A stretch of DNA of 64,000 nt, from IMG/VR virus record IMGVR_UViG_3300030202_003189, positions 62,001 through 126,000 of that record; one strand, 5' to 3'. The notes under the pieces were generated by a model. The model was not told the DNA's origin, searched no databases, and was given only the letters and a program-made list of their open reading frames with translations. How positions within the stretch are numbered: the stretch's first letter is position 1; every line of letters starts with the position of its first letter. This document shows positions 1-36,093 of this stretch, piece after piece. A program made the position numbers and the translations under genes.

Positions 1-1
1 A

Positions 2-199
2 AATGAACATATAGAATCTATAAAACCTATGGGTGAAAAAATGTCTTTATCAACCCCACCAAGTAACACACCAGAAAAAATGAATGAAAGATTTCCTGAC
101 CCTATGCACCCTTTTGGTGCTCCGAATCAGGATGCGAGACACATGTATAAAGAACATGGTTGGTTATTCGGAAATATGATGAGAGGAAAACGTTCTTAA
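2..199 (+). CDS. 3' end of a gene entering the window, probably terminase large subunit
   Basis: Open frame 2 ending TAA at 197-199 (...MYKEHGWLFGNMMRGKRS). Lies directly upstream of the portal, the gp17 position in T4-like order. Product inferred from synteny only. Confidence 0.45.
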   Translation, partial: NEHIESIKPMGEKMSLSTPPSNTPEKMNERFPDPMHPFGAPNQDARHMYKEHGWLFGNMMRGKRS

Positions 200-240
200 G
201 GTTTATATTATGAATTTTTTAGTTTATTATTAGTAATAAG

Positions 241-248
241 TATTTATA
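241..248 (+). promoter_or_regulatory. putative late promoter element TATTTATA (portal)
   Basis: Same motif recurs in sense orientation upstream of most structural transcription units. Confidence 0.55.
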
Positions 249-266
249 TTAAACAATACGAATTAA

Positions 267-2084
267 ATGGCCAAGAGAAATTTAACAATATATCAGAAAT
301 TACAACAAGTATTTGGTGCGGGGGCAATGAGAAGGACCCCACCAAGTTATAATGTTGACCCAAGTAAAATACTACTTAAAACACCATCAAAGTCTGAGTT
401 CGATCAAGAAAAACTACAGGCTCAACAACAAGCTTTTCTAAAAGGACAATGGAATAAAGTAGATAGTGAGTTATATAACCAAGCCATTTATTATGAAACA
501 ACTAGACTAGCATCATTTTATGATTTTGAGTCGATGGAATTTACACCAGAAATTGCCGCAGCTTTAGATATATACGCAGAAGAAAGTTGTACTCCAGATG
601 AAACAGGAACTTTACTTACTGTAGAATCAGACTCTAGTAGAATAAAAGATATACTAGATAATCTCTTCCATAAGGTTCTTGACCTACACGCGGTATTACC
701 AGCTTGGACAAGAAATACCTGTAAGTATGGGGATAATTTTGTTTACCTAAAAATTGACCCAAAACAAGGTATTATTGGGGCATCACAATTACCAAACATT
801 GAGATAGAGAGAAAGGATGAAAGTAGTTATCTTACCTCACGAAAATCCGGGACCTATGGAGTTGAGGGGGAGGAAGAAAAAGATAAGAACATTAAGTTTG
901 AATGGAGAAATAAATCAATCTCTTTTAACGCTTGGGAAATTGCTCATTTTAGGTTACTAGGAGATGATAGAAGACTACCATATGGAACTTCTTTATTAGA
1001 AAAAGTAAGACGAATCTGGAAACAATTATTATTATCGGAAGATGCTATGATGATATACAGGGTAACTAGAGCGCCGGAAAGAAGAGTCTTTAAGATAAAT
1101 GTTGGTAATATTGATGATCAAGATGTACAAGCATATGTGAATAAGATTGCTAATAATTTCAAAAGAAGTCATGCTATAGATCAAAATACAGGTCAGGCAG
1201 ATTTAAGATATAACGCATTAGCGGTTGACCAAGACTTTTTTGTTCCAGTTCGTAATGACGGAGCTGCTAATCCAATTGAGACACTACCAGGGGCTGGTAA
1301 TTTAGATCAGATTGCTGATATCGAGTACATCCAAAAGAAAATGTTATCAGCTTTAAGAATCCCAAAACCTTTTTTAGGGTTTGAAGAACCAGCGGGAGAA
1401 GGAAAGAATTTAGCACTTCAGGATATTCGTTTTGCTCGAACAATCAACAGAGTTCAACAATCAATGATTCAAGAACTTAATAAGATTGCTATAATACATC
1501 TTTATATTTTAGGTTTTGAGGATGAGTTGGAGAACTTTACCCTAAGATTGCAGAATCCATCAACACAAGCCGAAATGTTAAAAATAGAACAGTTCCAATC
1601 AAAAGTGGCGTTGTATAGAGATTCGGTGTCTGATGCAGGTAATGGTTTTGGTGCAACTTCTATGACTTGGGCAAAGAAAAATATATTAGGTTTTAGTGAT
1701 GATGATATTCTTCTAGATTTAGAAAGACAAAGAATGGAAAAAGCCGCAGCGGCAGAGATGGAGAACACTGCGGAAGTGATAAAAAGTACTGGTATTTTTG
1801 ATGAGGTAGATAAACTATATGGACAGGCGGCGGAAGGTGAAGATGTACCAGCAGAAGATAGCGGTGACGAACCACCAACTCCAGGAGAAGCAACTGGTGA
1901 TGTACCCCCACCGGCAGACGTAGATATGGATGATGATATGATGATGGAAAAGAAGAGTAGTTATGAAAATCTAGTTGATATTGTAAATCTTGATACAAAA
2001 AAGAAAGGTAAAAATACAAAAAGTAATTTAATTAAAGAAGACCTAGAGTACCTAAAAGATAATTTGGACAAACTTTTAGAATAG
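267..2084 (+). CDS. gp20: portal protein, T4 gp20-like
   Basis: PEIAAALDIYAEE, YGTSLLE, LLSEDAMMIYRVTRAPERRVFKINVGN, DFFVP, IETLPG, DIEYIQKKMLSALRIP: typical gp20 motifs. Confidence 0.93.
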   Translation: MAKRNLTIYQKLQQVFGAGAMRRTPPSYNVDPSKILLKTPSKSEFDQEKLQAQQQAFLKGQWNKVDSELYNQAIYYETTRLASFYDFESMEFTPEIAAALDIYAEESCTPDETGTLLTVESDSSRIKDILDNLFHKVLDLHAVLPAWTRNTCKYGDNFVYLKIDPKQGIIGASQLPNIEIERKDESSYLTSRKSGTYGVEGEEEKDKNIKFEWRNKSISFNAWEIAHFRLLGDDRRLPYGTSLLEKVRRIWKQLLLSEDAMMIYRVTRAPERRVFKINVGNIDDQDVQAYVNKIANNFKRSHAIDQNTGQADLRYNALAVDQDFFVPVRNDGAANPIETLPGAGNLDQIADIEYIQKKMLSALRIPKPFLGFEEPAGEGKNLALQDIRFARTINRVQQSMIQELNKIAIIHLYILGFEDELENFTLRLQNPSTQAEMLKIEQFQSKVALYRDSVSDAGNGFGATSMTWAKKNILGFSDDDILLDLERQRMEKAAAAEMENTAEVIKSTGIFDEVDKLYGQAAEGEDVPAEDSGDEPPTPGEATGDVPPPADVDMDDDMMMEKKSSYENLVDIVNLDTKKKGKNTKSNLIKEDLEYLKDNLDKLLE

Positions 2085-2089
2085 TTTTA

Positions 2090-2096
2090 TATTTAT
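2090..2096 (+). promoter_or_regulatory. putative late promoter element TATTTAT
   Basis: Intergenic, 16 nt before ATG at 2113. Confidence 0.45.
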
Positions 2097-2112
2097 TATA
2101 TAAACATACTGT

Positions 2113-2868
2113 ATGAAAAATTTCGGTGATTTACTAGATTCACTATACTCTAAAGCGTCGTCACAATTTGCTAATGATAAAAAAAATTGTAGCAAAATAC
2201 TCAAAGAGTGTATAAACACAATAAAAACAGATAAAATCTTATCTGATCAATTCATAATTTTTAATAATCTTAAAACTTCAGTTGTTGACGAAAAACAAGT
2301 TAACGATTATATAAATGAAAATGTCAATTCAATAAAGTTACATAGAACCAAGGATATTATTAATTCTAATCATAAATTAGAAAGATTATGTAATAAGTTA
2401 GGGACAAAAATTAAGAAAGATGAGTTAAATGAGTCGATATCAAATCTATGTTTCTTAATGAATACGGCTAAGAATGTTAATTCACTACACAAATCAAAGA
2501 ATATAATAAAGGAAAATTTATTGACTAATGAAAAAACAAAGAAAAGTGACACACCGTCAATTCCTTTGGCTTTAATGAGTAAACTTGTTAGTAAAAAGTA
2601 CAATAAAAAATATAGTGATTTAAGTGAATCAGATAAAAAATTACTTAAAACAATTCTTGAAAATAACGAGGGAGACGAAAAACTTTTCCAATCCTATAAA
2701 GAAAACGCAACAAAATTATTATCAAATAAGATAGTTGAGAATGATGACCCTACCTTACATACAAATTTGAAAAAAAGTTATAAGAAGGTATCTAGTATGG
2801 AGTATATAAGTGAGAGTTTAATAAACGATGTGAGTAAATTACATTATTTAATAGAAGGTTTAGGATAG
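2113..2868 (+). CDS. hypothetical helical protein (possible head assembly factor)
   Basis: 251-aa ORF directly after portal; Lys/Asn-rich; no recognisable motif. Confidence 0.6.
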   Translation: MKNFGDLLDSLYSKASSQFANDKKNCSKILKECINTIKTDKILSDQFIIFNNLKTSVVDEKQVNDYINENVNSIKLHRTKDIINSNHKLERLCNKLGTKIKKDELNESISNLCFLMNTAKNVNSLHKSKNIIKENLLTNEKTKKSDTPSIPLALMSKLVSKKYNKKYSDLSESDKKLLKTILENNEGDEKLFQSYKENATKLLSNKIVENDDPTLHTNLKKSYKKVSSMEYISESLINDVSKLHYLIEGLG

Positions 2869-2869
2869 A

Positions 2870-3124
2870 ATGGGAAGACTAACAAACGAAAATCTACACA
2901 GTGAGATTAAAATAGTGAAGAATGATATGATTTACCTTAAAGAAGGTCAAGCAAAAATGCAAGAAGACATTACTATGATTAAAAAAGTATTATTGAATCC
3001 AGACAACGGTACGGTATCAAGAGTAAATAAAAATACAGAGTTTAGAAAATCAACAGGAAAAGTTCTATGGTCCTTATGGATTGCTGTATTAGGGATAATA
3101 GGAAAAATAATATTCTGGAACTAA
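2870..3124 (+). CDS. small coiled-coil protein with C-terminal membrane anchor (holin-associated type)
   Basis: Heptad-like N-terminus and hydrophobic VLWSLWIAVLGIIGKIIFW tail. Confidence 0.55.
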   Translation: MGRLTNENLHSEIKIVKNDMIYLKEGQAKMQEDITMIKKVLLNPDNGTVSRVNKNTEFRKSTGKVLWSLWIAVLGIIGKIIFWN

Positions 3125-3136
3125 AAAATTAAAATT

Positions 3137-3430
3137 ATGAACTTTTTCAAAAACATGTTAAGTAGTGAAGGTAAAGTCTCAAGTAAGAGATTTGTAACTT
3201 TTGTTTGCTTATTATTTATGTTAATAGGATACACAGCTAATCTATTTTGGGATTTTACAATTGAGCCTGACCTATTTGCATCACTACAATGGATTGTAAT
3301 GGCAGGACTTGGTTTTACCGCGGCAGAGAATTTTTCACCTAAAGGTGAGGAATCTCCAGAAGAACCACCGGCACCAACACATACTACGGTAACTCATGAA
3401 TATGACTACCATAATGACGATGACATATAA
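3137..3430 (+). CDS. putative holin (2 TM)
   Basis: SSKR followed by two hydrophobic segments (FVTFVCLLFMLIGY; LQWIVMAGLGFTAA) and an acidic tail. Confidence 0.5.
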   Translation: MNFFKNMLSSEGKVSSKRFVTFVCLLFMLIGYTANLFWDFTIEPDLFASLQWIVMAGLGFTAAENFSPKGEESPEEPPAPTHTTVTHEYDYHNDDDI

Positions 3431-3441
3431 AGAATAAAAAA

Positions 3442-5079
3442 ATGGGTAGACAAAAATATAATAAAAGAAATCATATAGAAAAATCCAATATAATTTTGGA
3501 AAATAATTACTCTAAGAGTAAAGGGTTATTAACTGAACAACAAGCAACACTGGCTTGGTCATGTAATGGGTCACAACTAGTTAGTCATAGTTTTGATGCT
3601 AACATGGTACAACTTGGATTTACTGGTTATTGGGCCTCTGCATCGGGAGCGTTGCCTGTAATATTTGAGGCACAACTACCAACCGGTCCCGGAACTCCTA
3701 CAATGATAAACCAAGGTTTATATAATCAACCAGACGTTACATTAAGTTTTACGGGACCACAACCATCATTAGTGACTAACAACCAAGCATGGTTTCCAGA
3801 TGATTATCCTGGTTTTATGGCACCAGGCGTTATGCAGGGTATTGTAGGAGATATATGTGCTAGTGGTGGAACAATAACAAATGATACAGATTGTTACGAT
3901 TGTGTAAACGGAGTACCAACTGTAGTAGAAATTATAGGACCTAATTCATCTTGGTGTCAAAATGTACCAGGTGGTCCACAATGTGGAACTGATTGTACCT
4001 TAATACCTATGAATGCTGTAGGTGGAGTACTTCAATTCCCTCTAGTAAACGACCCTAACCTAGCTTGTGGACAAAACCAAGCAGATTGGTGGTGTCCAAC
4101 AGGAGTAGCAGGACCAGGTCCTTGTATACAATCACCAACAAACCCTCAACCAGGAATGGCAACAGGACCTTATCCAGATCAACAAACTTGTGACGCTCAA
4201 TGTGGCGGAATCGGACAAGTATCTGGTTGTTTAGATCCAAATTTACCAAATTATGACCCTAATGCAACTTTAGACTGTTCAGGAAATCCACAACCAGCGG
4301 CTGGATACGGAGATACTAATTGTTGTGGTATGCCACCACCGCCACCACCAAGTGGAGGTTGTATGGAATTATGGGTAACCAAATGTGCAGGAACTAGTCC
4401 TGGACACCAAATTGGACAATCAAATCTTCATTTCCCATGTCCAATGGTAGATGGATCATTTGCAGACCCAACTCTTGTTGGACAAGAAGTTGGTATAGAC
4501 CCATCATCAGGACAAGGAGGAGATGACGTATATACGGTAGATGTGGTTAACCCAAACCCTAATTACCCGTCACAATATACACCAAATTCTTATCTAACAA
4601 CTAATGTTAGTTGTACAACAAATCCAGCTAATGCTTCATGTGATTTTTCATGGACTAGTTCTTGTGCACAACAACACTTAAATACAGGAGGACAAAATTC
4701 TTGGCAGAATTTCCTTGACCTACGAGAAACCGGTTTTAATGGGGCGGGATGTCAACATCTACAAAATGTAGTAAATTGGACAACTGACCAGTTAAATTCA
4801 GGAGTTACTGGAGCAGGTGCACCATTAACCCCGAATCAAATAGCTAGAAAAACAGAACAGAGAGACTGGGCACAATGTCAAGCGGCGGAGTGTGGATGTA
4901 GTACACTTAATCTCCCAGCATTAACAGGAGGACCAACACCACCTCCACCAACAGATCCAGATTTAATCGATCCTGAAGTACCTACAGATAAACCAAAAAA
5001 ACCAAAACCAGGTGAAGAAGGAGGATTAAATGAACAGTTTACTAGAATGAAAGAACTGTGGAAGTACAATAAACTATAA
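3442..5079 (+). CDS. Cys/Pro/Gly-rich protein, putative internal head or virion protein
   Basis: Basic N-terminus ending LLTEQ, many Cys, a GCLDPNLPNYDPNATLDC module, C-terminal LNEQFTRMKELWKY. Confidence 0.7.
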   Translation: MGRQKYNKRNHIEKSNIILENNYSKSKGLLTEQQATLAWSCNGSQLVSHSFDANMVQLGFTGYWASASGALPVIFEAQLPTGPGTPTMINQGLYNQPDVTLSFTGPQPSLVTNNQAWFPDDYPGFMAPGVMQGIVGDICASGGTITNDTDCYDCVNGVPTVVEIIGPNSSWCQNVPGGPQCGTDCTLIPMNAVGGVLQFPLVNDPNLACGQNQADWWCPTGVAGPGPCIQSPTNPQPGMATGPYPDQQTCDAQCGGIGQVSGCLDPNLPNYDPNATLDCSGNPQPAAGYGDTNCCGMPPPPPPSGGCMELWVTKCAGTSPGHQIGQSNLHFPCPMVDGSFADPTLVGQEVGIDPSSGQGGDDVYTVDVVNPNPNYPSQYTPNSYLTTNVSCTTNPANASCDFSWTSSCAQQHLNTGGQNSWQNFLDLRETGFNGAGCQHLQNVVNWTTDQLNSGVTGAGAPLTPNQIARKTEQRDWAQCQAAECGCSTLNLPALTGGPTPPPPTDPDLIDPEVPTDKPKKPKPGEEGGLNEQFTRMKELWKYNKL

Positions 5080-5086
5080 ACATTAG

Positions 5087-5110
5087 AAAAACCCCAATCG
5101 GGGTTTTTTT
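5087..5110 (+). terminator. intrinsic terminator
   Basis: AAAAACCCC-AATC-GGGGTTTTTTT stem-loop with U tract. Confidence 0.85.
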
Positions 5111-5170
5111 ATTCAATAATATTTCATAATATTAAGTATCAATAACACTTAGAGAAAAAGAATATGAAAA

Positions 5171-5602
5171 ATGAAATTAGGAAAAGAATTATCTTTGAAA
5201 ACGGAAAAACCATTCAAAATATATATTGGAACGGTCAATAATAAAGAACCAAGAACCTTGTACATGGTTCTATCTAGCTGGGTTGAACCTCTACAAGATT
5301 TAGAAAACTACCAACCACACTTAAATAAAATTACAAAAAACATTAAACGGTTCCTAAGTGAAGTGGTACCTAAAGAAAGTTTCAATAAAGAAAAGATAAT
5401 TGTAGACTTCGACTTACGTTCATCAGGTATAACAAAAAATAAAAAGTCTTTTATGTCATGTGAGGTGACACTTTTTCAAAAGGAACTACGAAAGATAAAC
5501 TCCCCATCAGTTATTATGGAACTTCAATGGTTATCAACTAAATTAATCGGAGAGGTTTTCGAGCCGGATATTGGATTTAGGTACCACTTAAATAAAAAAT
5601 AA
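5171..5602 (+). CDS. hypothetical protein
   Basis: 143-aa ORF bracketed by two terminators. Confidence 0.65.
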   Translation: MKLGKELSLKTEKPFKIYIGTVNNKEPRTLYMVLSSWVEPLQDLENYQPHLNKITKNIKRFLSEVVPKESFNKEKIIVDFDLRSSGITKNKKSFMSCEVTLFQKELRKINSPSVIMELQWLSTKLIGEVFEPDIGFRYHLNKK

Positions 5603-5614
5603 TAAATAACTAAC

Positions 5615-5645
5615 ATAAAACCCACTCTGGTGGGTTTTATTTTTT
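5615..5645 (+). terminator. intrinsic terminator
   Basis: ATAAAACCCAC-TCTG-GTGGGTTTTAT followed by a T run. Confidence 0.85.
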
Positions 5646-5653
5646 CCCCCTTA

Positions 5654-5678
5654 TATTTATAATAAAAACAATATTTAT
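5654..5678 (+). promoter_or_regulatory. two putative late promoter elements (5654-5661, 5672-5678)
   Basis: TATTTATA and TATTTAT between the terminator and the protease ATG. Confidence 0.55.
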
Positions 5679-5682
5679 TAAT

Positions 5683-6372
5683 ATGGAACTTAAATTATTA
5701 AAAGAAGGTGAGGTAGGTTATGGGTTATTAGTAGAAAAGGATTCTGGTTATATTTCACCACAAACTACAGAGAATAAAAAAATTATAAAAGAAATGAATG
5801 AGATGGGTACTAGTTATGGACCTATCCAAATGGTTGCTGTCCTACAGAAATGTGGTGTACAAAATAGAAACGGAAGAGTTTATCCAGAAAACATTCTAAG
5901 AAAAGAAGTAGATAAACATCAGGAAGTAATACAGAATGGTAGGGCGATTTCAGAACTAAATCATCCTGACTCTTCTATTATTGATTTGGAGAGAACGTCA
6001 CATAAGTTGGACGAAACTTGGTGGGATGGTAATACCTTAATGGGAAAACTAACTTTGATAACTTCACCAGCTTACGAATCTAATGGTACTGCAACTACAC
6101 CAGGAGATTTGGCCGCTAATTTACTAAGACATGGAGTACAGTTAGGTATTTCATCTAGAGGGGTAGGGTCCTTATCAAATGTAGGAGGACAGAATATGGT
6201 ACAAGATGATTTTGAATTAATTTGTTTTGATTTGGTCTCGTCTCCGTCAACACCAGGGGCCTACCTATTCAATCAGGTTGAAGAAGCGAAACCTTATGTG
6301 GAATCAAGAAGACCACAAAAAATAATGGAGTCAAAATTAGACGAAACAATTAAAAATTTCTTAAAAGATTAA
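5683..6372 (+). CDS. gp21: prohead protease, T4 gp21-like
   Basis: NRNGRVYP, SELNHP, SH, LGISSRGVGS (catalytic Ser motif), FDLVSSPSTPGAY. Confidence 0.93.
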   Translation: MELKLLKEGEVGYGLLVEKDSGYISPQTTENKKIIKEMNEMGTSYGPIQMVAVLQKCGVQNRNGRVYPENILRKEVDKHQEVIQNGRAISELNHPDSSIIDLERTSHKLDETWWDGNTLMGKLTLITSPAYESNGTATTPGDLAANLLRHGVQLGISSRGVGSLSNVGGQNMVQDDFELICFDLVSSPSTPGAYLFNQVEEAKPYVESRRPQKIMESKLDETIKNFLKD

Positions 6373-6376
6373 AATT

Positions 6377-7588
6377 ATGAGTAATAGAATTAGAAAAGCA
6401 AAATATGACAATATGGTAAAATTAAATAGAACTCTATTGTCAGAAGAGAACCTAAACATCAATAATGAGCCAGATGTAGAAGAATATATAGGTTTAGAAG
6501 AAGAGAATCATGATTATGGAGGAACACCTCCATATACAAAAAAGACTAAAGGTAAAAAACTAAATGAAGGATGTGGTTGTGGAGAATCAAAAGAAACAAG
6601 TGAAAAGTCATATATGGCGGCATCACAGTTACATAGTATTTCTAATAAAGCAGAAGACATGTATAATAAATTAGAAAAAGATGAGGTCTTAGATGATTGG
6701 GTTGAAAGTCACTTAGCCAAAATTGATCAAATGATGGATAGTGTTAGTGATTCATTTAATCATCACGAATCAAAAGATGCTGGTGATATGGGTACAGGTG
6801 GATGTCCTCCAGGTCATCATTGGTGTGCGGCGTCTGATTCATGTAGATCAGATGATGCCCCACAAATCGAACCTATGACTTTAATGGGAGCAGATGTGAT
6901 TAACTTAGAAGAATCAATTAGAAGAAAATTAAACTTAAGTGAACAAACAAATCCATTCGCTGGTGGTGGTTCAGGACCAAATTGGGCTGCGGCTGAAGCT
7001 GCTTGGACTGATTGGAACGCTTCAAATCAAACAGGAGCCCCTGAACCGGATGCAACTTTTTTATCTAATATGGATGGTAAAGGTTGTGGATTTTACCAAA
7101 AACGTTTAGACGCTCAAGTAAATTCTTTTGTTAACAATTTTGGTGGTAGTTTTGGTGCTGGTTCAAACGCTTCAAATGCACAACATCAAGGTCAAAACCC
7201 AGCTTGGCAGAGTCAAAAATATGCTAGAATAATGTGGTTATCAGACGCGGTATATAATTGTAACAATTCTAATACTACAGGAGGTTCTTTAACTACTACT
7301 TCTAGTGCTCAAGAATCTAATGCAAATTGTTTCTATACTTTCCTTAATGACCCAGCAAATGACCCATTACTTACTAACGCAGTATGTCCTAATGGTAATC
7401 AAGCAATAAAACCAAATAATATGGAACAAACTAAATTTAGGTGGCAATCAATATCCGACTGTCAAATGTTAAATACCAAAATAGCAAAAATGTTAAATTT
7501 GGCACAAACCACAACAGGGTGTGAACAGGTTAGGAAATCTGCAAAACATGAGTATTTGGTTGAATTAAGACAAAGTTGTTGTAATTAA
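6377..7588 (+). CDS. multi-segment Cys-rich putative internal head protein
   Basis: LLSEE, LNEG and LNLSEQ protease-type sites; acidic N-half; two copies of a Cys-bracketed helical domain in the C-half. Confidence 0.7.
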   Translation: MSNRIRKAKYDNMVKLNRTLLSEENLNINNEPDVEEYIGLEEENHDYGGTPPYTKKTKGKKLNEGCGCGESKETSEKSYMAASQLHSISNKAEDMYNKLEKDEVLDDWVESHLAKIDQMMDSVSDSFNHHESKDAGDMGTGGCPPGHHWCAASDSCRSDDAPQIEPMTLMGADVINLEESIRRKLNLSEQTNPFAGGGSGPNWAAAEAAWTDWNASNQTGAPEPDATFLSNMDGKGCGFYQKRLDAQVNSFVNNFGGSFGAGSNASNAQHQGQNPAWQSQKYARIMWLSDAVYNCNNSNTTGGSLTTTSSAQESNANCFYTFLNDPANDPLLTNAVCPNGNQAIKPNNMEQTKFRWQSISDCQMLNTKIAKMLNLAQTTTGCEQVRKSAKHEYLVELRQSCCN

Positions 7589-7589
7589 T

Positions 7590-8366
7590 ATGAATTTAAT
7601 AGAAAATATAAAAAAAGAATTAAGATTATTAACTGAGCAAAGCTCTTGGTGGACAACTATGACCTCATGGGCAACAGCAGCAGATGCAGTTAATACTTCA
7701 AATGCACCAGCCACTTCAGATCCAAATACTCCTGCAGCCCCAGGTGTAACAGGTTCATACTCTTCAAATGGTGTGTGTTTTGATTCAGCAGCTAGTACGT
7801 GTCAATTAAATAATAGTTTATCTCACACTCAGAAATGGAATCAATATGTTGCCTGTTTAGATCCTTATGCAACTCCTTGTACTTTAGGTACGAAAGTACA
7901 ACAGGGGACTCCCGGATATAATTCTCAATACGCAGGACAACAGTTATGTATTACACATACCGCTCCCTCCAATGTGACAGGGGGATATTCGCCATATGAA
8001 ATACTTGAACTTAATTCTCCTGATTGTGCAATTGCATCAACTCCATGTGACACAACACCATCTTCACCATGTGCACAACAGTGGTTCCAAAACCCTAACG
8101 CGACATGGGCATCAACTTGGATAACTAATAGAGATTGTTCAAATTACAATTGGCCATCAATTAATTTAGAACAACAAGCAATGGATATAATGAATGACCC
8201 AACAACTCCAAACCCACAAAGTGGTCCTTTTAATAATTGGAATGACATATGGTCAGCAGGTAACGTCGCATGGCCAAATACTACAGGAGCTCCTAAAACC
8301 CAATTCATTGCAAAAATGGCGAAAGCTAAATATGCGCAATGTCAAATACAAGCATGTAACTGTTAA
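7590..8366 (+). CDS. Cys-rich putative internal head protein
   Basis: Leader MNLIENIKKELRLLTEQ; C-terminus AKMAKAKYAQCQIQACNC resembles ARKTEQRDWAQCQAAECGC of the 3442 ORF. Confidence 0.7.
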   Translation: MNLIENIKKELRLLTEQSSWWTTMTSWATAADAVNTSNAPATSDPNTPAAPGVTGSYSSNGVCFDSAASTCQLNNSLSHTQKWNQYVACLDPYATPCTLGTKVQQGTPGYNSQYAGQQLCITHTAPSNVTGGYSPYEILELNSPDCAIASTPCDTTPSSPCAQQWFQNPNATWASTWITNRDCSNYNWPSINLEQQAMDIMNDPTTPNPQSGPFNNWNDIWSAGNVAWPNTTGAPKTQFIAKMAKAKYAQCQIQACNC

Positions 8367-8369
8367 ACT

Positions 8370-8795
8370 ATGAATTTAAGAAAAAACATAAAAAAACAAT
8401 TACGTCTATTAAAAGAAACGGATGATAGACCAGACAATTGGAGAGAACTACCAGGATATAATCCTGATGCTTTTTATCCGATAACGAATTATGGTGATGA
8501 TGATTTAAGGTTAGAACCTGAGGATGACGATACTTCTTCTAGACTACCAGCTCATTTCTATGAGGATGATTATGATTTAGATGAGGGGGACTTAGATGAA
8601 ATTTTTGACGAAACTCAAAGAGGAGACAGGGTTAGATATTTCGTAGACGTTTATTATGATACTATGTTACCAAGTTCTGGAAATGCAGAAAAAGATAAAG
8701 TTTTGGCGGAAAAAATTGCTAGAGCTGATCTTCGTAGTCTTAAAAATCGAGAGTATATTATAGGACCTGTAGAATTAAGAGGATACTATAATTAA
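8370..8795 (+). CDS. acidic putative internal head protein
   Basis: Leader MNLRKNIKKQLRLLKE, nearly the same as the upstream gene; unrelated acidic body. Confidence 0.65.
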   Translation: MNLRKNIKKQLRLLKETDDRPDNWRELPGYNPDAFYPITNYGDDDLRLEPEDDDTSSRLPAHFYEDDYDLDEGDLDEIFDETQRGDRVRYFVDVYYDTMLPSSGNAEKDKVLAEKIARADLRSLKNREYIIGPVELRGYYN

Positions 8796-8846
8796 TATTT
8801 ACTGACAAAATTTCATGTGAACACGTCTTTTTTATGTTCTCAGGTA

Positions 8847-8891
8847 TATTTATTAAAAAACTCCCTACGGAGTTCTTTACGCTTTTGCGTA
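8847..8891 (+). promoter_or_regulatory. putative late promoter (8847-8853) plus two 5'-leader hairpins
   Basis: TATTTAT, then AACTCC-CTAC-GGAGTT (8859-8874) and TACGC-TTTT-GCGTA (8878-8891). Confidence 0.55.
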
Positions 8892-8924
8892 TATTAATAA
8901 CAAAGATTAAAAAAATTAAGTCAA

Positions 8925-10334
8925 ATGGCAGAAAAATCTTTAGTAGAACAAGCTCTTCTTGAAGCGAAAACAATCGAGGAATCAGTTAAGAGGAGTGCAA
9001 AAGAAATACTACCTTCAGTTTTGAAGAAAGAAATTAACGACCTAGTAAAAGAATCCATCAACGAAGTTGATGAGATTGATTTAGATTCAGACACACTTGA
9101 CATTACTGACGATGAAATGGACATGGATATGGAACCAATAAGTGGTGACATGGATATGGGTATGGATTCAATTGAATTAGACTTGACAGCGTCATCAGAT
9201 GATGAAGTTATGAAAGTATTCAAAAAAATGGGCCCAGAAGACGAAATCGAAGTTGTAAAGACTGGCGATGGCGTAACGCTTACAGATGGTAATGAAGAGT
9301 ATGAGATAAAAAACGTTTCAGAAGGAAAAAAGAACGAACCAATTTATGAAATTGAATTGGACGACGACATGATGGAAATGGAAGACATGGATGAAATGGA
9401 AGACATGGACGAAATGGAAGACGACATGATGGAAGGACACCATGGAATGAAAAAGGGAGACCAATCAAAAACTCGTAGTGATTATAAAAACTACAAAGGG
9501 ACTGATAAAGGATACCACGGTAAAACTGGAGCTTCACATGGTGATCAAGGACATCCTGATGACTTTATGACTGAATACGATGACATGGATGAAATGTATG
9601 GTGGTAAAAAAGGCGATGAGTCTAAAAGTCACAGAGATTACATGGATGAAATGCATAGTAAAAAACGTCATATGGAAATGCACGACGAACAAATGTATGA
9701 AATTGAACTTGATGAGGAGGACGATTTAGAAGAAGGAACAGCTAGAAGTCACGCAAAAGGACAAAGAGCATCTTCTGGTGAAAGAAAAGGCTCCCCAAAA
9801 CCAAGTGCAATTCCAAATAAAGCTCTTTACAAAAAGAACATAAAGGAATCAAGAAAACCACAAAGAACAATTTCACCAAGAGTTATTAAGGAAAACAAAG
9901 CGTTAAGAGGTACGTTGGCTAAGTATGGTGACGAAGTTAAGACTCTAAAAGGAAAGAATGAAGAATATAGAAAAGCTCTTTCTTTATTTAGAGAAAAACT
10001 AAACGAAGTTGCAGTATTTAATTCAAATTTAGCTTACACAACAAAATTGTTTACTGATCACTCAACAACAAAGAAAGAAAAGTTAAATATACTTTCTAGA
10101 TTTGATGAGGTTAATTCATTAAAAGAATCTAAGTCTCTTTACAAACAAATAAATTCTGAAGTTGGTACAGGTAAATCATCTGCAAGACTTAAAGAAGTTA
10201 TTTCTCGTAAAGGTGGAACTAAGGTTATAACAGAAAGTAATAATAGTGCTAATAATAGTACTATAAGAGAAAATAAAGTTTACCAAGATCCTCAAATGAA
10301 AAGAATGATGGATCTAATGAGTAAAATAAAATAA
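8925..10334 (+). CDS. prohead core/scaffold protein (gp22 position)
   Basis: Immediately upstream of MCP; acidic low-complexity centre, coiled-coil C-half, many I/L-x-E sites. Confidence 0.8.
   Translation: MAEKSLVEQALLEAKTIEESVKRSAKEILPSVLKKEINDLVKESINEVDEIDLDSDTLDITDDEMDMDMEPISGDMDMGMDSIELDLTASSDDEVMKVFKKMGPEDEIEVVKTGDGVTLTDGNEEYEIKNVSEGKKNEPIYEIELDDDMMEMEDMDEMEDMDEMEDDMMEGHHGMKKGDQSKTRSDYKNYKGTDKGYHGKTGASHGDQGHPDDFMTEYDDMDEMYGGKKGDESKSHRDYMDEMHSKKRHMEMHDEQMYEIELDEEDDLEEGTARSHAKGQRASSGERKGSPKPSAIPNKALYKKNIKESRKPQRTISPRVIKENKALRGTLAKYGDEVKTLKGKNEEYRKALSLFREKLNEVAVFNSNLAYTTKLFTDHSTTKKEKLNILSRFDEVNSLKESKSLYKQINSEVGTGKSSARLKEVISRKGGTKVITESNNSANNSTIRENKVYQDPQMKRMMDLMSKIK
9375..9422 (+). repeat. 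in-frame 18-bp tandem repeat (EMEDMD x2.7)
   Basis: GAAATGGAAGACATGGAT / GAAATGGAAGACATGGAC / GAAATGGAAGAC. Confidence 0.85.
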
Positions 10335-10359
10335 CACATTTATAAAAAATAATTAAAAA

Positions 10360-12297
10360 ATGGGACAATTATTAAATTCAGGACAAGTTGGAAACATTGG
10401 AACTAATTCAATGAAACTTATCCGTGAGGATGTAATCAATAAATGGGACAAACTAGGTTTCCTAGATGGTCTTAATGGTTACTCTAAAGACAACGTTGCT
10501 CAATTATTTGAGAACCAAGCTTCTTATCTAATTAACGAGCAAACAACATCAACTGACTCAGGTTCATTCGAAACAGTTGTATTCCCAATCGTAAGGAGAG
10601 TATTCTCTAAACTTTTGGCTAACGATATTGTTTCTGTACAAGCACTTAACTTACCAATTGGTAAATTATTCTACTTTGTACCGGAAATATCTACTAACAG
10701 ACCAGGATTCAACGCTGGTGGATTTGACGCGTCAACTCCTTCATCAGTTGATTTATATGACCAATTCTATGAAGGTAGAACTGGAGATCCAGAAGGAGGA
10801 TTATTTGATGCTTCAAGAGGACTTGCAACTGTAAATATCATTAGACCTTCAGGAGCTGGAGCTGCTGCTAACGGTAACATCGGTTTATACGACTCTTCAG
10901 GAGCGTTCTCTGCAGCAACTGAGGATATGGATACTAGAGATCACAGATACATCGTATTAAAAATCGATTCTGCTACTTTAGTTACTACTGGAACTATGGT
11001 AGGTGCTGATGGTCAATTGGCTGATACTGAAGCTTTCTTAGCTTCATTAAACATCTACTTAACAGGATCTACAACTTCTGCTTCTGCAGCTGATTTAGCG
11101 GCATCTATCGGAACTACTTATGGTATGCCATGTAACGTTTCTGATTCAGTAACTGCAAACACTTACTTAAGAGCTACTGGTATTGTTGGAAATAATGGAG
11201 ATGGTATATTTACACAAGTTGGTAATACTACTGGTGTACTTTCAGGAGGTACTAGACTTAAGTACAGAATGATTACACAAAAGTATGGTCAAGGTATTGT
11301 TGATTCTGCTGGTGATTTATATGTTGAGGTAGACTTCGGTTGTCCAGCATGTCCAGACTGTCAAACTGTTGCTGGTAGAGGTTATGGTAATCCAGGTACT
11401 GCGGCAGGTGTTGGGGCTACTGTACCAAATACTTTTATTACTGCTGATGGTGCGGCTGAGGCTTTAGGTGCGGCTAATAACGGAGCACAAAAACATGGTT
11501 TAGCTGTTGAGTTTAAGAACTACGCAACTTTAGAATTAGAAGACAACATGGCTGAGGTAACTTTCAGATTGGATTCTGTAACTGTAGCGGTAACAGAAAG
11601 AAAATTAAGAGCTACTTGGTCTCCGGAACTTGCACAAGACGTTTCTGCATTCCATAACATTGATGCTGAGGCTGAATTAACAGCTTTATTATCAGAACAA
11701 GTTGCTGCTGAGATTGATAGAGAAATCTTGAAAGACCTTAGAAATGGTGCGGCTTGGTCATTAAGATGGGACGCTAACGGATGGAAAAGATCTAATAACG
11801 CTCAAGGTTACGCAGCTTATACTCAAAAAGATTGGAATCAAACGTTAATTACTACAATTAACCAATTATCTGCACAAATACATAAATCAACACTTAGAGG
11901 TGGTGCTAACTGGATCGTATGTTCAGCTGAAGCTTCTGCTATCTTTGATGATTTAGAGTATTTCCACGTTTCTAACGCGGCTCCAGATCAAGATTCTTAT
12001 AACATGGGTATTGAGAAAGTTGGTTCTTTATCAGGTAGATATACTGTATATAGAGACCCTTACTTCCCAGCTGGTTCAGTTTTAGTTGGACATAAAGGAA
12101 AATCATTACTAGATACTGGTTATGTTTACGCTCCTTATGTACCGTTACAACTTACACCAACTATGTATAACCCTTTCAATTTTGCTCCTATCAAAGGAAT
12201 CATGACTAGATACGCTAAGAAAATGGTCAACAACAGATTCTATGGTAAGATTACTATTGATGGAATACAAACGTTCTCTGTTAATGAGTTAAGATAA
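10360..12297 (+). CDS. gp23: major capsid protein, T4 gp23-like, with large insertion
   Basis: AQLFENQ, PIVRRVF..LLANDIVSVQ, RKLRATWSPELAQD..AFHNIDAEAEL, EIDREI, YAPYVPL, GIMTRYA. Confidence 0.96.
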   Translation: MGQLLNSGQVGNIGTNSMKLIREDVINKWDKLGFLDGLNGYSKDNVAQLFENQASYLINEQTTSTDSGSFETVVFPIVRRVFSKLLANDIVSVQALNLPIGKLFYFVPEISTNRPGFNAGGFDASTPSSVDLYDQFYEGRTGDPEGGLFDASRGLATVNIIRPSGAGAAANGNIGLYDSSGAFSAATEDMDTRDHRYIVLKIDSATLVTTGTMVGADGQLADTEAFLASLNIYLTGSTTSASAADLAASIGTTYGMPCNVSDSVTANTYLRATGIVGNNGDGIFTQVGNTTGVLSGGTRLKYRMITQKYGQGIVDSAGDLYVEVDFGCPACPDCQTVAGRGYGNPGTAAGVGATVPNTFITADGAAEALGAANNGAQKHGLAVEFKNYATLELEDNMAEVTFRLDSVTVAVTERKLRATWSPELAQDVSAFHNIDAEAELTALLSEQVAAEIDREILKDLRNGAAWSLRWDANGWKRSNNAQGYAAYTQKDWNQTLITTINQLSAQIHKSTLRGGANWIVCSAEASAIFDDLEYFHVSNAAPDQDSYNMGIEKVGSLSGRYTVYRDPYFPAGSVLVGHKGKSLLDTGYVYAPYVPLQLTPTMYNPFNFAPIKGIMTRYAKKMVNNRFYGKITIDGIQTFSVNELR

Positions 12298-12320
12298 GTA
12301 TTTCTAAACTTTATATAATG

Positions 12321-12349: not shown

Positions 12350-13261
12350 TTATAAACAACTTAGATATCTATTTCCTCTATCACAGAGTATGGTAATTCC
12401 CTCTCTTTCGTTATTGTCTCTTAACCATTGAAAGGTTGCCATTACATTCGCACCTCCACTAATACCAATAAACAAACCATAGTTTTTAGCTAGGTGTTTA
12501 GTAATACTTTTCGCACATTCGGTCTTGATGACTCGTATGTCATCAACTAAATCTAAATCGACTAAGAACTTACTACCATCACCAATACCTTGTATCCCAT
12601 GTAATCCAACTTCCCCTCCACTCATTACTGGAGATTCTGCTGGCTCCACGGCAACAATTTTTATATCTTCCCATTTTTCTTTTAGAAATTTACGAGTTCC
12701 CATTAAGGTACCACCAGTACCTGTCCCAGCAACAAAAACTGCAGGAGAATCATTTCTCCTATAACTTCCCCTCTCTTTAGGTAAAGACCAATCCTCATAG
12801 ATTTCTGGTCCAGTAGTTTGATAATGAGCCTCAATGTTTAAGGGATTATGAAATTGATTACAATTAAACCAACCATTTCGTTTACAAAGATTATCTCTAA
12901 GTTCGATAGCCCCATCAAAATCTCCTTCATCTACTTCTATTAATGTCGCCCCATAATACTTAAACATTTTTTTACGTTCCTCGGACATATTTGATGGCAT
13001 AATAATTACCATTTTATAACCTCTTTCTGACGCTAACATAGCAAACGCAATGCCACTATTACCACTAGTTGCTTCACATATCGTACTGTTTTTTTGGATA
13101 ACACCTTTTTGTTGGGCATCATTAAGTATAAAAGATGCCATACGGTCTTTTACAGAGCCAGAAGGGTTCATAAATTCAGCTTTACCCCAAACGGTAAGGT
13201 TACCTAAAGTAATAGGGATTAACGGTGTTTTACCAATGTGGTCAGATAATTTCATATTCAT
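12350..13261 (-). CDS. cysK: cysteine synthase / O-acetylserine sulfhydrylase family (PLP-dependent)
   Basis: IGKTPLI, NPSGSVKDR (PLP lysine), EATSGNSG, GTGTGGT, HGIQGIG, GISGGAN, CDRGNRYLS. Confidence 0.9.
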   Translation of the reverse strand: MNMKLSDHIGKTPLIPITLGNLTVWGKAEFMNPSGSVKDRMASFILNDAQQKGVIQKNSTICEATSGNSGIAFAMLASERGYKMVIIMPSNMSEERKKMFKYYGATLIEVDEGDFDGAIELRDNLCKRNGWFNCNQFHNPLNIEAHYQTTGPEIYEDWSLPKERGSYRRNDSPAVFVAGTGTGGTLMGTRKFLKEKWEDIKIVAVEPAESPVMSGGEVGLHGIQGIGDGSKFLVDLDLVDDIRVIKTECAKSITKHLAKNYGLFIGISGGANVMATFQWLRDNNEREGITILCDRGNRYLSCL

Positions 13262-21706: not shown

Positions 21707-22372
21707 TTACATTCCATTTAATAACTCAAAAACCGCGTCTATTGCTTCATGACGATGGTTATCAGTTAATAATGATTTATATACGAATTTTGACGTAGAT
21801 ATTTTTGGTACCTCATGTATCGCAGAGTAATTTTTATCTTTAAGATCAATCTGTTGGTTATCCCCAGTAAATATCATAGTGGAATTCTTACCCAACCTAC
21901 TTAATACCATAGATAACTGAGATTTAGTTAAGTTTTGAAATTCGTCGATAATACACACACTGTCCTCAAAAGTTCTTCCTCTAAAGTGAGCCAACGAAAC
22001 CAACTCAATCTGCTCCTCCCTTTCCATTTTATCAAGAATAGGTGGTTTATTATAAACCTTTCTCATATTCGATCTAATCGGTACCAACCAAGGTTCCATT
22101 TTTTCTCTTTCAGAACCAGGTAAAAATCCATTATCTTCTGTAGAGACCGTTGGTCTAGTGATAATGATTTTATTACATTGTTTCTTAAAGAATTGGTCAA
22201 GTGCGATTTGTACCGCTAATAATGTCTTACCACTACCCGGTTTTCCAACAATAAAATTAAAAGGGTGTTTCAGTATTTCTGTTTTGGCCTTTTTTTGTTC
22301 CGGTGAAAGAGAAAGTGAAAATCTCACAGATCCCTTTGGTGGAGTTTTATCTTTATTATTTTTTGGTGACAT
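21707..22372 (-). CDS. phoH: PhoH-family ATPase
   Basis: GKPGSGKT, ITRP, GFLPG..EKM.PW, FRGRTF, IIDEFQN, SRLG, GD..QIDL. Confidence 0.93.
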   Translation of the reverse strand: MSPKNNKDKTPPKGSVRFSLSLSPEQKKAKTEILKHPFNFIVGKPGSGKTLLAVQIALDQFFKKQCNKIIITRPTVSTEDNGFLPGSEREKMEPWLVPIRSNMRKVYNKPPILDKMEREEQIELVSLAHFRGRTFEDSVCIIDEFQNLTKSQLSMVLSRLGKNSTMIFTGDNQQIDLKDKNYSAIHEVPKISTSKFVYKSLLTDNHRHEAIDAVFELLNGM

Positions 22373-23378
22373 CTAGTATTTTTTTTATGTTATCTATTAT
22401 TATTTTAGAAGGTCTTCCATTTTTCATGTAGAAATCCTTCATTCTTGTACTCTTAGTATTAGTTGCCCAGTTTATGGGGTTGATAATATTTTTATATCTT
22501 ACTCCGTAATCCGCTGACTCTACTTCTGTCCACTCAATATTATTTCTCATAACTATACATTTTTTAGAAAAAAATGGACAAGTCTTCATTAAACCTCCTG
22601 AGTCTGTAATGATAAATTTACAGCTTGATAATGCGTCTATCATTTCACTATATTTTGCGGGTGGTTTTATGGTTATATTTTTTGGAAGGACGATGTTGTT
22701 ACCTTCAATAAAGGATTCTGTACTGTGATGTAAGTAAAAGTCTATAGGTTTATTGTATTTTTCACAGAAAGAAAGAATTTTAGAAAAACTTTCAACATTC
22801 TGATTCTCTTTTCTATGAATTGTCATAACAGGAGGACCAACAAAAGTAATATCTTTATCGTAATGTTTATTAAGTAATTCGTATTCTAAATCACCAGACA
22901 CTATTTCATTATTAAAAAAGTCCTGTATGTATCCTGTTTCTCTAGGTGTGAATTGAATCTGTGATGCCAAGTCTGCGACTATCCTGTTTAATTCCTCCGG
23001 AACTTTAATATCGTTACATCTTCGACCGGCTTCTACATGACCAAAAGGGATTTTGTGTTTATAACAAACTAAAGAGGAAGATAAAGTGCTATTTGTATCT
23101 CCGTATATTAAAACAAAATCAGGTTTTTCTTTTTTTAATATTTCACTAAACCTTTCCATAGTTTGTGATATGAAAGATACTTCATCATTATTAGATATTT
23201 GTAAATCGTGATCTATAATAAGGGAAAACTCTTCTATAAAGTAATCAGAAACATTTTCACTATAGTGTTGGTTGGTGTCAACAATGATATGGTTAATCTT
23301 ATTTTCGTTACAATAATCAAAAATAGGTTTTACTTTTACGTATTGAGGTCTAGTTCCTATTATGCTAAGAATCTTCAT
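22356..23378 (-). CDS. UDP-N-acetylhexosamine 2-epimerase, non-hydrolysing (WecB/WbpI-like)
   Basis: GTRPQYVK, QHY, YGDTNST, HVEAG, PEELNR, TIHR.EN, ITDSGG. Confidence 0.88.
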   Translation of the reverse strand: MKILSIIGTRPQYVKVKPIFDYCNENKINHIIVDTNQHYSENVSDYFIEEFSLIIDHDLQISNNDEVSFISQTMERFSEILKKEKPDFVLIYGDTNSTLSSSLVCYKHKIPFGHVEAGRRCNDIKVPEELNRIVADLASQIQFTPRETGYIQDFFNNEIVSGDLEYELLNKHYDKDITFVGPPVMTIHRKENQNVESFSKILSFCEKYNKPIDFYLHHSTESFIEGNNIVLPKNITIKPPAKYSEMIDALSSCKFIITDSGGLMKTCPFFSKKCIVMRNNIEWTEVESADYGVRYKNIINPINWATNTKSTRMKDFYMKNGRPSKIIIDNIKKILDVTKK

Positions 23379-29591: not shown

Positions 29592-30535
29592 TTGTCTTTT
29601 ATGTATTTTGCTGTTCTTAATATCCCTTCTTCTAAATCTATTTTAGACGTAAAACCTAAAACTTCCTTTGCTTTTTCTACGCTTGGTATTCTAATTGCAA
29701 CATCCGCTGATAATGGTGGATCAAAAACAATTTTAGATTTAGAGTTTAGAACCCTACAAATTGTTTGTGCCAAACCTAAAATAGTTATAACGGCTCTCGG
29801 ATTACCTATGTTAAAACTTTCTCCTACGGCTTTCGGATTTATTATACACTCTTCTAAACAATCTACAAAATCGTCAACGTAACACCAGGCTCGTATTTGA
29901 TTTCCATCCCCATCAATGTGAATATCTTCATTTCGTAAGGCTTTTTCAATAAAAATTTGTAACGCTCCGTTAGCTGACTGTCCAGGTCCATAAACATTAA
30001 AAGGTCTAATAGTAACTACTGGTAAATTGTATTGAGTCGTATAAGCTTTTGCTAAATGTTCTCCGGCTAACTTACTTACTGCATAAACCCATCTAGCCTC
30101 ACCAGCAGAGCCCGCCACTGTTTGGTCTTCTTCTTTAGATTTGAAAGCCATTGAACCAAAGACTTCAGAAGTTGAGAATTCTACAATTCTATCTTTAATC
30201 CCTAGTCTCTGACATACTTCTAAAACATTAGCCGTACCTATCATGTTAACCCTCATTGTTTTAACAGGGTATTTTATTACCGTATCAATTCCAGCAATCG
30301 CGGCTGCGTGTATAACAATATCAGGGAGATTAGAACTCATGGATATAGATAGTTTATCATAGTCTAAAATGTCTCCTTTAATAATTGTTAAATTTTTATG
30401 ACCACTTAAACCACTAGAAGATAGGGTATCCCTCTCAAAATTATCATATACAGTAATTTTGTGAGTTTTTATAAATCTTTTAATTATTGTGTTGGCGATA
30501 AATCCAGCCCCTCCTGTTATAAAAATCTTTTTCAT
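29564..30535 (-). CDS. NAD-dependent nucleotide-sugar epimerase/dehydratase (extended SDR)
   Basis: [41 protein letters not shown]. Confidence 0.9.
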
Positions 30536-35382: not shown

Positions 35383-35383
35383 T

Positions 35384-36082: not shown

Positions 36083-36093
36083 TCTTGTGTGAT

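Follow-up and report, generated by a model that had tools for sequence, protein, structure and literature searches.

A 64,000-nucleotide stretch of DNA, referred to here as the window (positions 62,001 to 126,000 of the IMG/VR virus record IMGVR_UViG_3300030202_003189), encodes three cysteine-rich proteins, A, B and C, within the head-morphogenesis module of a T4-like jumbo phage. Judged from gene context, motif statistics and the comparison of homologues, these proteins and their cysteine-free neighbour D are probably accessory internal head proteins, which are targeted to the capsid and cut by the prohead protease. The window is part of a single virus record of 231,285 bp (the genome in what follows), with 34% G+C and a CheckV completeness of about 70%. 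A preliminary description of the window had singled out the three open reading frames (ORFs), which start at 3442, 6377 and 7590, as a set flanking the prohead protease and had proposed that their products are packaged in the head and matured by that enzyme. The ORFs are as described, the four amino acid strings quoted from them are all present, and the gene that they flank has a PF03420 (S77) match. At the level of sequence, packaging and maturation are well supported by the operon context, the N-terminal enrichment of the predicted cut site, the sites at the junctions of fused modules and the match with the predicted site of the capsid protein.

In the proposed pathway, the proteins would be synthesized in the cytoplasm, each starting with a short propeptide that is basic and amphipathic. 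Acting like the capsid-targeting sequence of T4, this propeptide would bring the protein into the prohead's scaffold core. The S77 protease would then cut after a hydrophobic-x-Glu motif, usually before Gln, which removes the propeptide. The same cleavage would split fused precursors, such as B at E189/Q190, and the C-terminal tail of A is probably also removed, at E531/Q532. Compact, acidic, Trp- and Cys-rich helical domains, each with at most one further predicted cut site, would remain in the DNA-filled capsid. Their invariant cysteines may lock the fold, either as disulfides formed when the virion reaches oxic seawater or through a bound metal. At infection, the proteins would leave with the DNA. 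The computed results are the gene context, the protein families with their domains, a motif that is enriched, fixed in position and conserved, the shuffling of modules among precursors and a confidently modelled, apparently new fold; packaging, cleavage, the redox state of the cysteines, ejection and any role in the host are inferred. For ejection, a host target and the question of disulfides or bound metal, the models are T4 IPI* and Alt, together with the phiKZ and SPN3US ejection proteins.

The predicted cut-site tag

The motif L-x-E-Q occupies residues 30-33 of A, 187-190 of B and 14-17 of C. The more general form, hydrophobic-x-E-Q, lies within the first 60 residues of 123 of the 150 proteins that carry the C-terminal domain of C (the C domain), against a mean of 6.0 and a maximum of 12 in 200 shuffles. 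In the remainder of the same 150 proteins its rate is 0.029 per 60 amino acids (aa). The N-terminal enrichment is about 20-fold. The sites fall at discrete positions (8, 14, 18 and 28-30) and have L, I or M as the P3 residue. Throughout the genome there are 36 L-x-E-Q motifs, with about 13 expected, and an N-terminal copy is present in 7 of 23 cysteine-rich genes versus 6 of 217 others (Fisher p 3.5e-5). Matches to the shorter pattern [LIVM]-x-E are scarce in the folded cysteine domains, with none in the C domain, one in the six-cysteine domain of A and one in module B2 of protein B, whereas the scaffold-like protein has 26 hydrophobic-x-E sites.

The site is also found where modules meet. A hydrophobic-x-E(Q) site stands 0-3 residues before B2 in 27 of 27 B2 domains, whether stand-alone or fused. 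In every listed fusion of B1, the first module of B, a site follows either directly or within about 17 residues; in B itself, B1 in turn follows L-N-E64/G. The internal linker of B, INLEESIRRKLNLSE/Q, is the N-terminal propeptide of the stand-alone B2 proteins (221-239 aa). Read from these alignments, B is a fusion of B1 and B2 with a propeptide retained at the internal junction. B1 recurs at 72-86% identity in 19 proteins, where it is followed by different partners (B2, the C domain or further cysteine-rich segments), and the first half of B2 has a paralogue at genome positions 30284-30643. The cysteine-rich part of each protein had been described as beginning right after L-x-E-Q; the motif is there in A, B and C, but in B the five-cysteine module B1 (aa 45-176) lies upstream of L-S-E-Q.

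Propeptides and mature parts occur in several combinations. Those of C and D share 12 of 16 N-terminal residues on mature parts that are unrelated; the D propeptide, of the same type as that of C, reads MNLRKNIKKQLRLLKE/T with its predicted cut site at L-K-E16, and D is conserved in the relatives L094, L096 and L102. A second type, MKKSQLRKIIRESIKEL..EQ, is found on B2 proteins and on one C-domain protein in the relative L103; the related type IKxKESDLTxxVKRxI is carried by genome ORF 22356 and by some of the B2 proteins. A single mature domain can carry differing propeptide types. By such comparisons the predicted tag is modular and portable. The A paralogues of L094 and L096 have MTEQ, LMEQ or LNEQ at aa 29-33.

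The major capsid protein provides a further point of reference. Its predicted maturation site, L-I-N-E61/Q62, has a counterpart in the L-T-E65/A site of T4 gp23, which lies upstream of the block aligning with the window capsid protein. L-I-N-E is invariant in 68 capsid proteins of the lineage, and the next residue, mostly A, is Q in the window clade. This Q also occurs in L005, one relative without genes of the A, B or C type.

Cysteine-rich modules and the six-cysteine domain

The cysteine content is 4.8% in A, 3.2% in B and 4.7% in C; for the genes of the genome the median is 0.9%, and the 90th percentile lies at 2.8%. As the preliminary description held, the proteins lack signal peptides, since their N-termini are hydrophilic. 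Each ORF has 39-58 homologues, from marine and some freshwater metagenomes, and A, B and C are therefore real conserved genes. Searches of Pfam, PHROGs and NCBIfam assigned none of A, B, C and D to a family, in keeping with the earlier statement that A, B and C could not be placed in a known one. In the mature parts more than 50% of the residues are N, Q, S, T, G or P, and Trp as well as Cys is abundant. The isoelectric points (pI) of the mature parts lie between 4.0 and 6.1 (mature A 4.05, C 4.5, B2 6.1).

Protein A consists of a propeptide, a variable Cys/Pro/Gly-rich body, the six-cysteine domain and a conserved C-terminal tail. The tail, of the form K-rich ... L-N-E-(E/Q)-F-x-R-M-K-x-L-W-K-Y, ends the protein in about 35 of 44 A homologues. 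A is a mosaic among its homologues in the same manner as B. Feature searches of the ESM Atlas with the A body and with B1 returned only unnamed viral clusters.

Homologues of C keep a 16-residue N-terminus, MNLxENIKKELRLxxEQ, and the C-terminal domain, and have a middle part that cannot be aligned. In contigs from other metagenomes the C propeptide and the C domain are likewise kept while the intervening part differs, a pattern that would fit, tentatively, a cassette-like replacement of the middle. A diversity-generating retroelement was considered as the source of this variation and rejected, the record containing no reverse transcriptase.

The six-cysteine domain common to A and C spans about 90-105 residues, is all-helical and forms, in nearly every case, the C-terminal end of C-type proteins, where its cysteine pattern is C-x7-CAQQW ... 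DC ... C-x4-C-N-C. The preliminary description had assigned four cysteine-bracketed helical units of A, B and C to one family and had proposed profile searches and structure prediction to examine them. BLASTP among the three window proteins gives weak similarity (E 0.01-0.05). Profiles built from homologues unite the units of A and C: hhalign of a C-only against an A-only profile (A aa 396-490) gives E 8e-6 and a probability of 84% over the full length, with the six cysteines in register, and a jackhmmer search seeded with C brings in A (5e-22) as well as a protein of 1065 aa encoded at genome positions 203415-206612 (7e-18). The A and C units are thus the C-terminal two-thirds of one real domain. 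The two B units (aa 236-295 and 361-403) are not joined to it; each is a conserved family of its own, stays outside the A/C family in iterative searches and matches the A/C profiles weakly and over short spans (E 1e-3 over 29 columns, E 1e-4 over 20 columns). AlphaFold2 draws both as helical hairpins bracketed by invariant cysteines, in an all-alpha B2 model with a predicted local distance difference test (pLDDT) score of 59, too poor for fold comparison.

The C domain was modelled by AlphaFold2 from 64 sequences as five helices with a pLDDT of 94 and a predicted template modelling score (pTM) of 0.87. Foldseek found no significant neighbour of this model, the best hits being E 1.4 in the PDB, E 0.6 in the AFDB clusters with a template modelling (TM) score below 0.4, and E 0.9 in BFVD. 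A Foldseek-independent scan (VIA) of 48,161 PDB chains gave a best Z of 5.0. Even models without a clear match are reported to score in this range or above it. Saposin, CHCH and PMEI folds were considered and rejected, the searches giving no superposition above TM 0.5 and no significant E or Z value. The sole TM of 0.50 came from a cluster of 221-aa proteins in the ESM Atlas that is all-viral and unnamed; this is a lead only, 221 aa being the size of stand-alone B2 proteins. The C-domain profile matched nothing in a sequence search of the PDB and 81 proteins among 1.84 billion cluster representatives. In the light of this model, the six-cysteine domain appears to be a new fold limited to one marine phage clade. 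Co-loss of cysteines gave no signal on disulfide pairing, as nearly all members retain all six.

At least 10 further tagged cysteine-rich proteins are encoded in the genome (ORFs at 9469, 11553, 14128, 17503, 22356, 23225, 30284, 30665, 31366, 38911 and 203415). A second cysteine-rich cluster lies at genome 9-40 kb, also including ORF 29291, with N-termini of the form hydrophobic-x-E(Q/A/K), and several of its proteins hold a 'GC-x-F-L ... helix ... C' hairpin resembling the unit first noted in A, B and C. ORF 38911 shares the mature N-terminus of A (LLTEQGATQAWTCCCNG versus LLTEQQATLAWSCNG). ORF 22356-23219 contains a run of N (XXXX) inside a repeated MDNWWGNDWGKVADDGGG segment, either a masked stretch or an assembly gap. 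The 1065-aa protein on the + strand at 203415-206612 has 50 cysteines, an N-terminal IKLNEQ, internal INLQEQ and MKLTEQ and no Pfam match. It combines at least six CTDxxAxNYNxxAxxDDGSC repeats with an A-type six-cysteine domain (E 1e-39) and a C-terminal tail like that of A, GELNEQLSRMKTL. CTDxxAxNYNxxAxxDDGSC modules are also present in the variable middle of the C homologues P0011, P0012 and P0037.

Such features could also belong to externally exposed virion proteins (head fibres, decoration proteins, adhesins, or accessories of the tail or baseplate), with the N-terminal helix serving as a virion-attachment peptide. This explanation is unlikely, although it accounts for several observations. 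The cysteines would reflect extracellular life, in line with the acidic, N/Q/S/T/G/P-, Trp- and Cys-rich composition, and the hypervariable middle an interaction with host or receptor, the conserved ends around it being arranged as in receptor-binding proteins. The repeats common to C homologues and the 1065-aa protein speak for it too, as does the C-domain gene of L103, which stands beside ORFs with N-termini that look tail-fibre-like by eye. It does not account for the location of the genes within the protease-scaffold operon, nor for the same tag on the cysteine-free, acidic D, nor for its resemblance to the start of the scaffold protein. The tag is, moreover, retained at the internal junctions of fusions, and its E-Q matches the predicted maturation site of the capsid protein. 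The T4 outer capsid proteins Hoc and Soc are not known to have such a propeptide, which also counts against exposure at the surface.

The head module, its variable slots and alternative readings

Bases 1-12,300 of the window form a T4-like myovirus head-morphogenesis module in which all genes lie on the + strand (Table 1). Gaps of 1-4 nt separate the protease, B, C and D genes, and a second terminator-like hairpin lies 3′ of the gene for the 143-aa protein. The protease is 35% identical to T4 gp21 and keeps the ELNHP and GxSSRG (GISSRG) motifs, that is, the catalytic His and Ser. In T4, the core genes 67 and 68 sit between the portal and protease genes. The T4 late-promoter motif TATAAATA was looked for upstream of these head genes and not found.

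Table 1. Genes, protein segments and predicted cleavage sites of the head module (window coordinates; a slash marks the predicted cut)
Feature	Position	Strand	Remarks
Portal	267-2084	+	PF07230, 3.6e-75
251-aa protein and two small membrane-like proteins	between portal and A	+
Protein A	3442-5079	+	545 aa, 26 Cys
A propeptide (aa 1-32), ends L-T-E32/Q33	3442-3537	+	separate N-terminal high-scoring segment pairs in most A homologues
A six-Cys helical domain (aa 396-490)	4627-4911	+	C400, C408-AQQ, C437, C479, C484, C486
A C-terminal tail	5026-5076	+	L-N-E531/Q, then FTRMKELWKYNKL
Terminator-like hairpin 3′ of A	5087-5110	+	recognized in the sequence itself
Conserved basic 143-aa protein	5171-5602	+	in all relatives; no family match (Pfam, PHROG, NCBIfam)
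Prohead serine protease, T4 gp21 / S77 family	5683-6372	+	PF03420 3.8e-25; phrog_207 4.6e-45
Protein B	6377-7588	+	403 aa, 13 Cys; starts 4 nt past the protease stop
B1 module (aa 45-176)	6509-6904	+	five Cys; GCGCG, acidic helices, GGCPPGHHWCxxxxxC
B internal linker INLEESIRRKLNLSE189/Q190	6899-6943	+	predicted cleavage junction
B2 module (aa 190-403)	6944-7585	+	eight invariant Cys, two Cys-bracketed helical hairpins
Protein C	7590-8366	+	258 aa, 12 Cys; starts 1 nt past the B stop
C propeptide MNLIENIKKELRLLTE16/Q17	7590-7637	+	E16 and Q17 near-invariant in the C-homologue alignment
C hypervariable middle (aa 17-149)	7638-8036	+	not alignable among homologues
C domain (aa 150-258)	8037-8363	+	five helices, six near-invariant Cys
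Protein D	8370-8795	+	141 aa, acidic, no Cys
Acidic scaffold-like protein	8925-10334	+	26 hydrophobic-x-E sites; L-V-E-Q at aa 6-9
gp23-type major capsid protein	10360-12297	+	PF07068 2.9e-71
Predicted capsid-protein maturation site L-I-N-E61/Q62	10531-10545	+	just upstream of the gp23-aligned block

In about 40 more distant relatives the module has a fixed order: portal, a protein of about 240 aa, bS21, a protein of about 150 aa, protease, a 69-aa DUF4494 protein, scaffold and capsid protein. None of these head modules contains cysteine-rich genes, and both the six-cysteine domain and B2 are absent from the five more distant relatives examined for them, one being a 93%-complete genome of 272 kb. 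Close relatives (Tara Oceans contigs of 177-273 kb) have the same two insertion slots with differing contents: A-type genes of 324 and 664 aa or of 458 aa before the gene for the 143-aa protein, and genes of 405, 244 and 138 aa or of 604 and 144 aa after the protease. Given the fixed order without cysteine-rich genes in the distant relatives, A, B, C and D are insertions that are specific to the clade and vary within it, in a head operon that is otherwise conserved. Copy number and modules thus vary among close relatives and the genes are lacking in distant ones; together with the further tagged proteins of the genome, this agrees with the earlier proposal of an expanding set. The 69-71-aa ORF between protease and scaffold in the relatives (L011:5984-6193 and equivalents) is DUF4494 (PF14902, 2.9e-7); it is unrelated to B, C and D, which hold its slot in the window clade.

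This distribution bears on a second alternative, in which the proteins are transient assembly factors of the prohead core, like T4 gp67, gp68 and gp22, and would be cut and then expelled before DNA is packaged, hence neither kept in the head nor injected. The genomic slots are those of T4 genes 67 and 68, the acidic helices of B1 are scaffold-like, and D is acidic as the scaffold protein is. The case is nonetheless slightly poorer than that for surface proteins. Heads are built without A, B and C in about 40 relatives whose portal, protease, scaffold and capsid genes are the same, and the three proteins are consequently not core assembly parts. With no more than one [LIVM]-x-E match apiece, the folded cysteine domains (100-200 aa) would remain as large fragments after cleavage, and in T4 it is mostly peptides derived from cleaved core proteins and from propeptides that exit the head (PMC9026906). 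The poorest candidates of all are cytoplasmic non-virion proteins (Zn- or metal-binding regulators, or anti-defence factors) in which L-x-E-Q is a conserved helix unrelated to the protease: C-x-C, CC and CPPGHHWC (B1) motifs could bind metal, the genome encodes thioredoxin and glutaredoxin and no thiol oxidase, and the cytoplasm is reducing, but the operon position, the junction sites, the capsid-site match and the N-terminal restriction of the motif are left unexplained, which makes this very improbable. Of four observations (operon position, junction sites, capsid-site match and absence from relatives with the same head type), at least two are left unexplained by each of the three alternatives.

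Several observations weigh against the packaging of A, B, C and D as internal head proteins. Some paralogues lie outside head modules, as does the L103 homologue, which stands next to two ORFs whose N-termini seem tail-fibre-like by eye. A strict motif is missing from 27 of the 150 C-domain homologues, and as the homologues are related, the tag counts are not independent events. At the C-terminal site of A, the residue that follows is usually E, not Q, among A homologues. The mature parts are acidic, unlike the basic DNA-binding internal proteins of T4, and their composition is like that of proteins exposed at a surface or secreted. Disulfide-locked domains may fail to pass the tail tube. An Erv-type thiol oxidase was looked for in the genome and not found, while thioredoxin and glutaredoxin are present. 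A tblastn search with A, B and the C domain gave no match in 50,697 GenBank phage records, so that no relative among them carries the families.

A more far-reaching version of the internal-protein reading can be offered as a speculation, on balance doubtful. A clade of marine jumbo phages of Bacteroidota would load its capsids with mini-domains of a new fold, encoded as polyproteins and shuffled rapidly. Through their six invariant cysteines these would become disulfide-locked only after release into oxic seawater, and they would be delivered folded to the envelope or periplasm of the host, to act there as anti-defence factors or redox-stable effectors, with a cysteine-synthase-like gene of the phage supplying the extra cysteine. 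The cysteine-synthase-like gene encodes a pyridoxal phosphate (PLP) enzyme at window positions 12350-13261 on the − strand, adjoining the capsid gene (PF00291 2e-65; TIGR01136 cysKM 6e-86, below the curated cut-off). It is kept at the same place in L093, L096 and L102 and is represented by two ORFs in L094. A link with the many cysteine-rich putative virion proteins is a tempting conjecture.

The capsid protein itself, at 645 aa, is longer than T4 gp23 (521 aa) and contains a large insertion (about aa 110-370) that cannot be aligned to gp23 and carries a CPACPDC motif (C328, C331, C334). By this protein, the nearest isolates are Microcystis phage Mel-JY01 and Flavobacterium phage immuto, at only about 41-43% identity, and the approximately 40 metagenomic relatives stand at 52-56%. 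Marine metagenomes of at least 10 studies (2014-2025) contain near-identical sequence. In the relatives checked, a bS21 gene (PF01165, 8.4e-11) lies inside the head module on the opposite strand, e.g., at L011:4532-4717 (−). Phages with bS21 are predicted to infect Bacteroidetes, and a bS21 gene in the head module is their hallmark (PMC9723584). The window genome has bS21 elsewhere, at genome 214878-215018 (−), and its slot in the window clade is filled by A and the two small membrane-like proteins (2870-3124 and 3137-3430).

The host is probably a member of the Bacteroidota. Outside the window, genome positions 33021-36809 (+) encode a protein of 1262 aa and 75 cysteines with a Bacteroidota-style signal peptide and a C-terminal sorting domain of the type IX secretion system (T9SS; PF18962, 8e-12); such phage-encoded T9SS cargo again points to a host of this phylum. 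A, B and C were also considered as cysteine-rich proteins secreted through Sec or the T9SS, and this was rejected: they differ from ORF 33021-36809 in their hydrophilic N-termini and have no Pfam match (no Por_Secre_tail). A second signal-peptide protein is encoded at genome 200870-201661. The 25 nt upstream of the head-module genes (window 242-10359) are A/T-rich leaders in which no purine-rich motifs like a Shine–Dalgarno sequence are visible; as far as can be judged by eye, this fits a Bacteroidota host. At the far end of the window are tandem tail-sheath paralogues of 938 and 1160 aa (56654-59470 and 59492-62974, both +), each matching phrog_23 at about 1e-55.

Significance and comparison with known systems

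If A, B, C and D are indeed internal head proteins, the tag-and-protease cargo system of T4 extends to an abundant, uncultured lineage of marine phages. Its elaborations there would be multi-module precursors with internal cut sites, interchangeable types of tag and an acidic, cysteine-rich cargo of apparently new fold. A hydrophobic-x-E/Q site near the N-terminus would then be a sequence rule from which the head proteome of these phages could be predicted. The compact AlphaFold2 domain would lend itself to structural work, and the propeptide would be a candidate natural tag for loading foreign proteins into the capsids of Bacteroidota phages. The strategy of trimming and loading as such is already known from phage T4. 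What appears to be new are the domain families, the fold without neighbours, the cysteine-rich acidic cargo, the fusions that keep their cut sites and the C-terminal tails.

Studies of T4 have shown that gp21 cuts after L/I-x-E and that the internal proteins are highly diverse apart from a short N-terminal targeting propeptide (PMC9026906, PMC3012670). This capsid-targeting tag, of roughly 10 residues, directs the protein into the prohead core and is then removed by gp21 (PMC9026906, PMC3012670). The proteins described here resemble IPI, IPII, IPIII and Alt in having a short N-terminal propeptide that ends in L/I-x-E, with a protease of the gp21 family encoded nearby, and in having diverse, non-essential and fast-evolving mature parts that share only the tag. 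As in IPI*, the mature domain would be compact, and IPI* has been proposed to pass the tail without unfolding (PMC3012670, PMC9026906). The differences are also considerable. A, B, C and D have no sequence similarity to the T4 proteins by PHROG or Pfam, their propeptides are longer (16-32 aa) and of several types, and the mature proteins are acidic and cysteine-rich, whereas IPI-III are basic and bind DNA. Their genes lie within the head operon, their packaging is a prediction, and they include polyprotein-like fusions with internal cut sites, as well as C-terminal tails.

The T4 core proteins gp67 and gp68 are likewise encoded between the portal and the protease and scaffold, and are substrates of the same class of protease, as is predicted here. 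The position of gp68 is matched by the conserved gene for the 143-aa protein, directly 5′ of the protease. No homology to gp67 or gp68 can be detected, and A, B and C are much larger, contain folded cysteine domains and are absent from most relatives.

Small all-alpha domains with cysteine staples at the helix ends are known from twin-Cx9C CHCH proteins, saposin-like proteins and the bundles of PMEI and invertase inhibitors. The likeness is one of analogy only, the cysteine spacing being different and no structural match being significant.

Among other jumbo phages, phiKZ, 201phi2-1 and SPN3US have expanded sets of head-internal paralogues that are processed after Glu by the prohead protease (PMC10052503, PMC5694885). 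In these phages the cleavage motif is A/S/G-x-E and the propeptides are mostly long, whereas the P3 residue here is L, I or M. Those phages belong to an unrelated lineage without homology to the present proteins (no PHROG match), and their paralogues are not described as cysteine-rich in PMC10052503 and PMC5694885.

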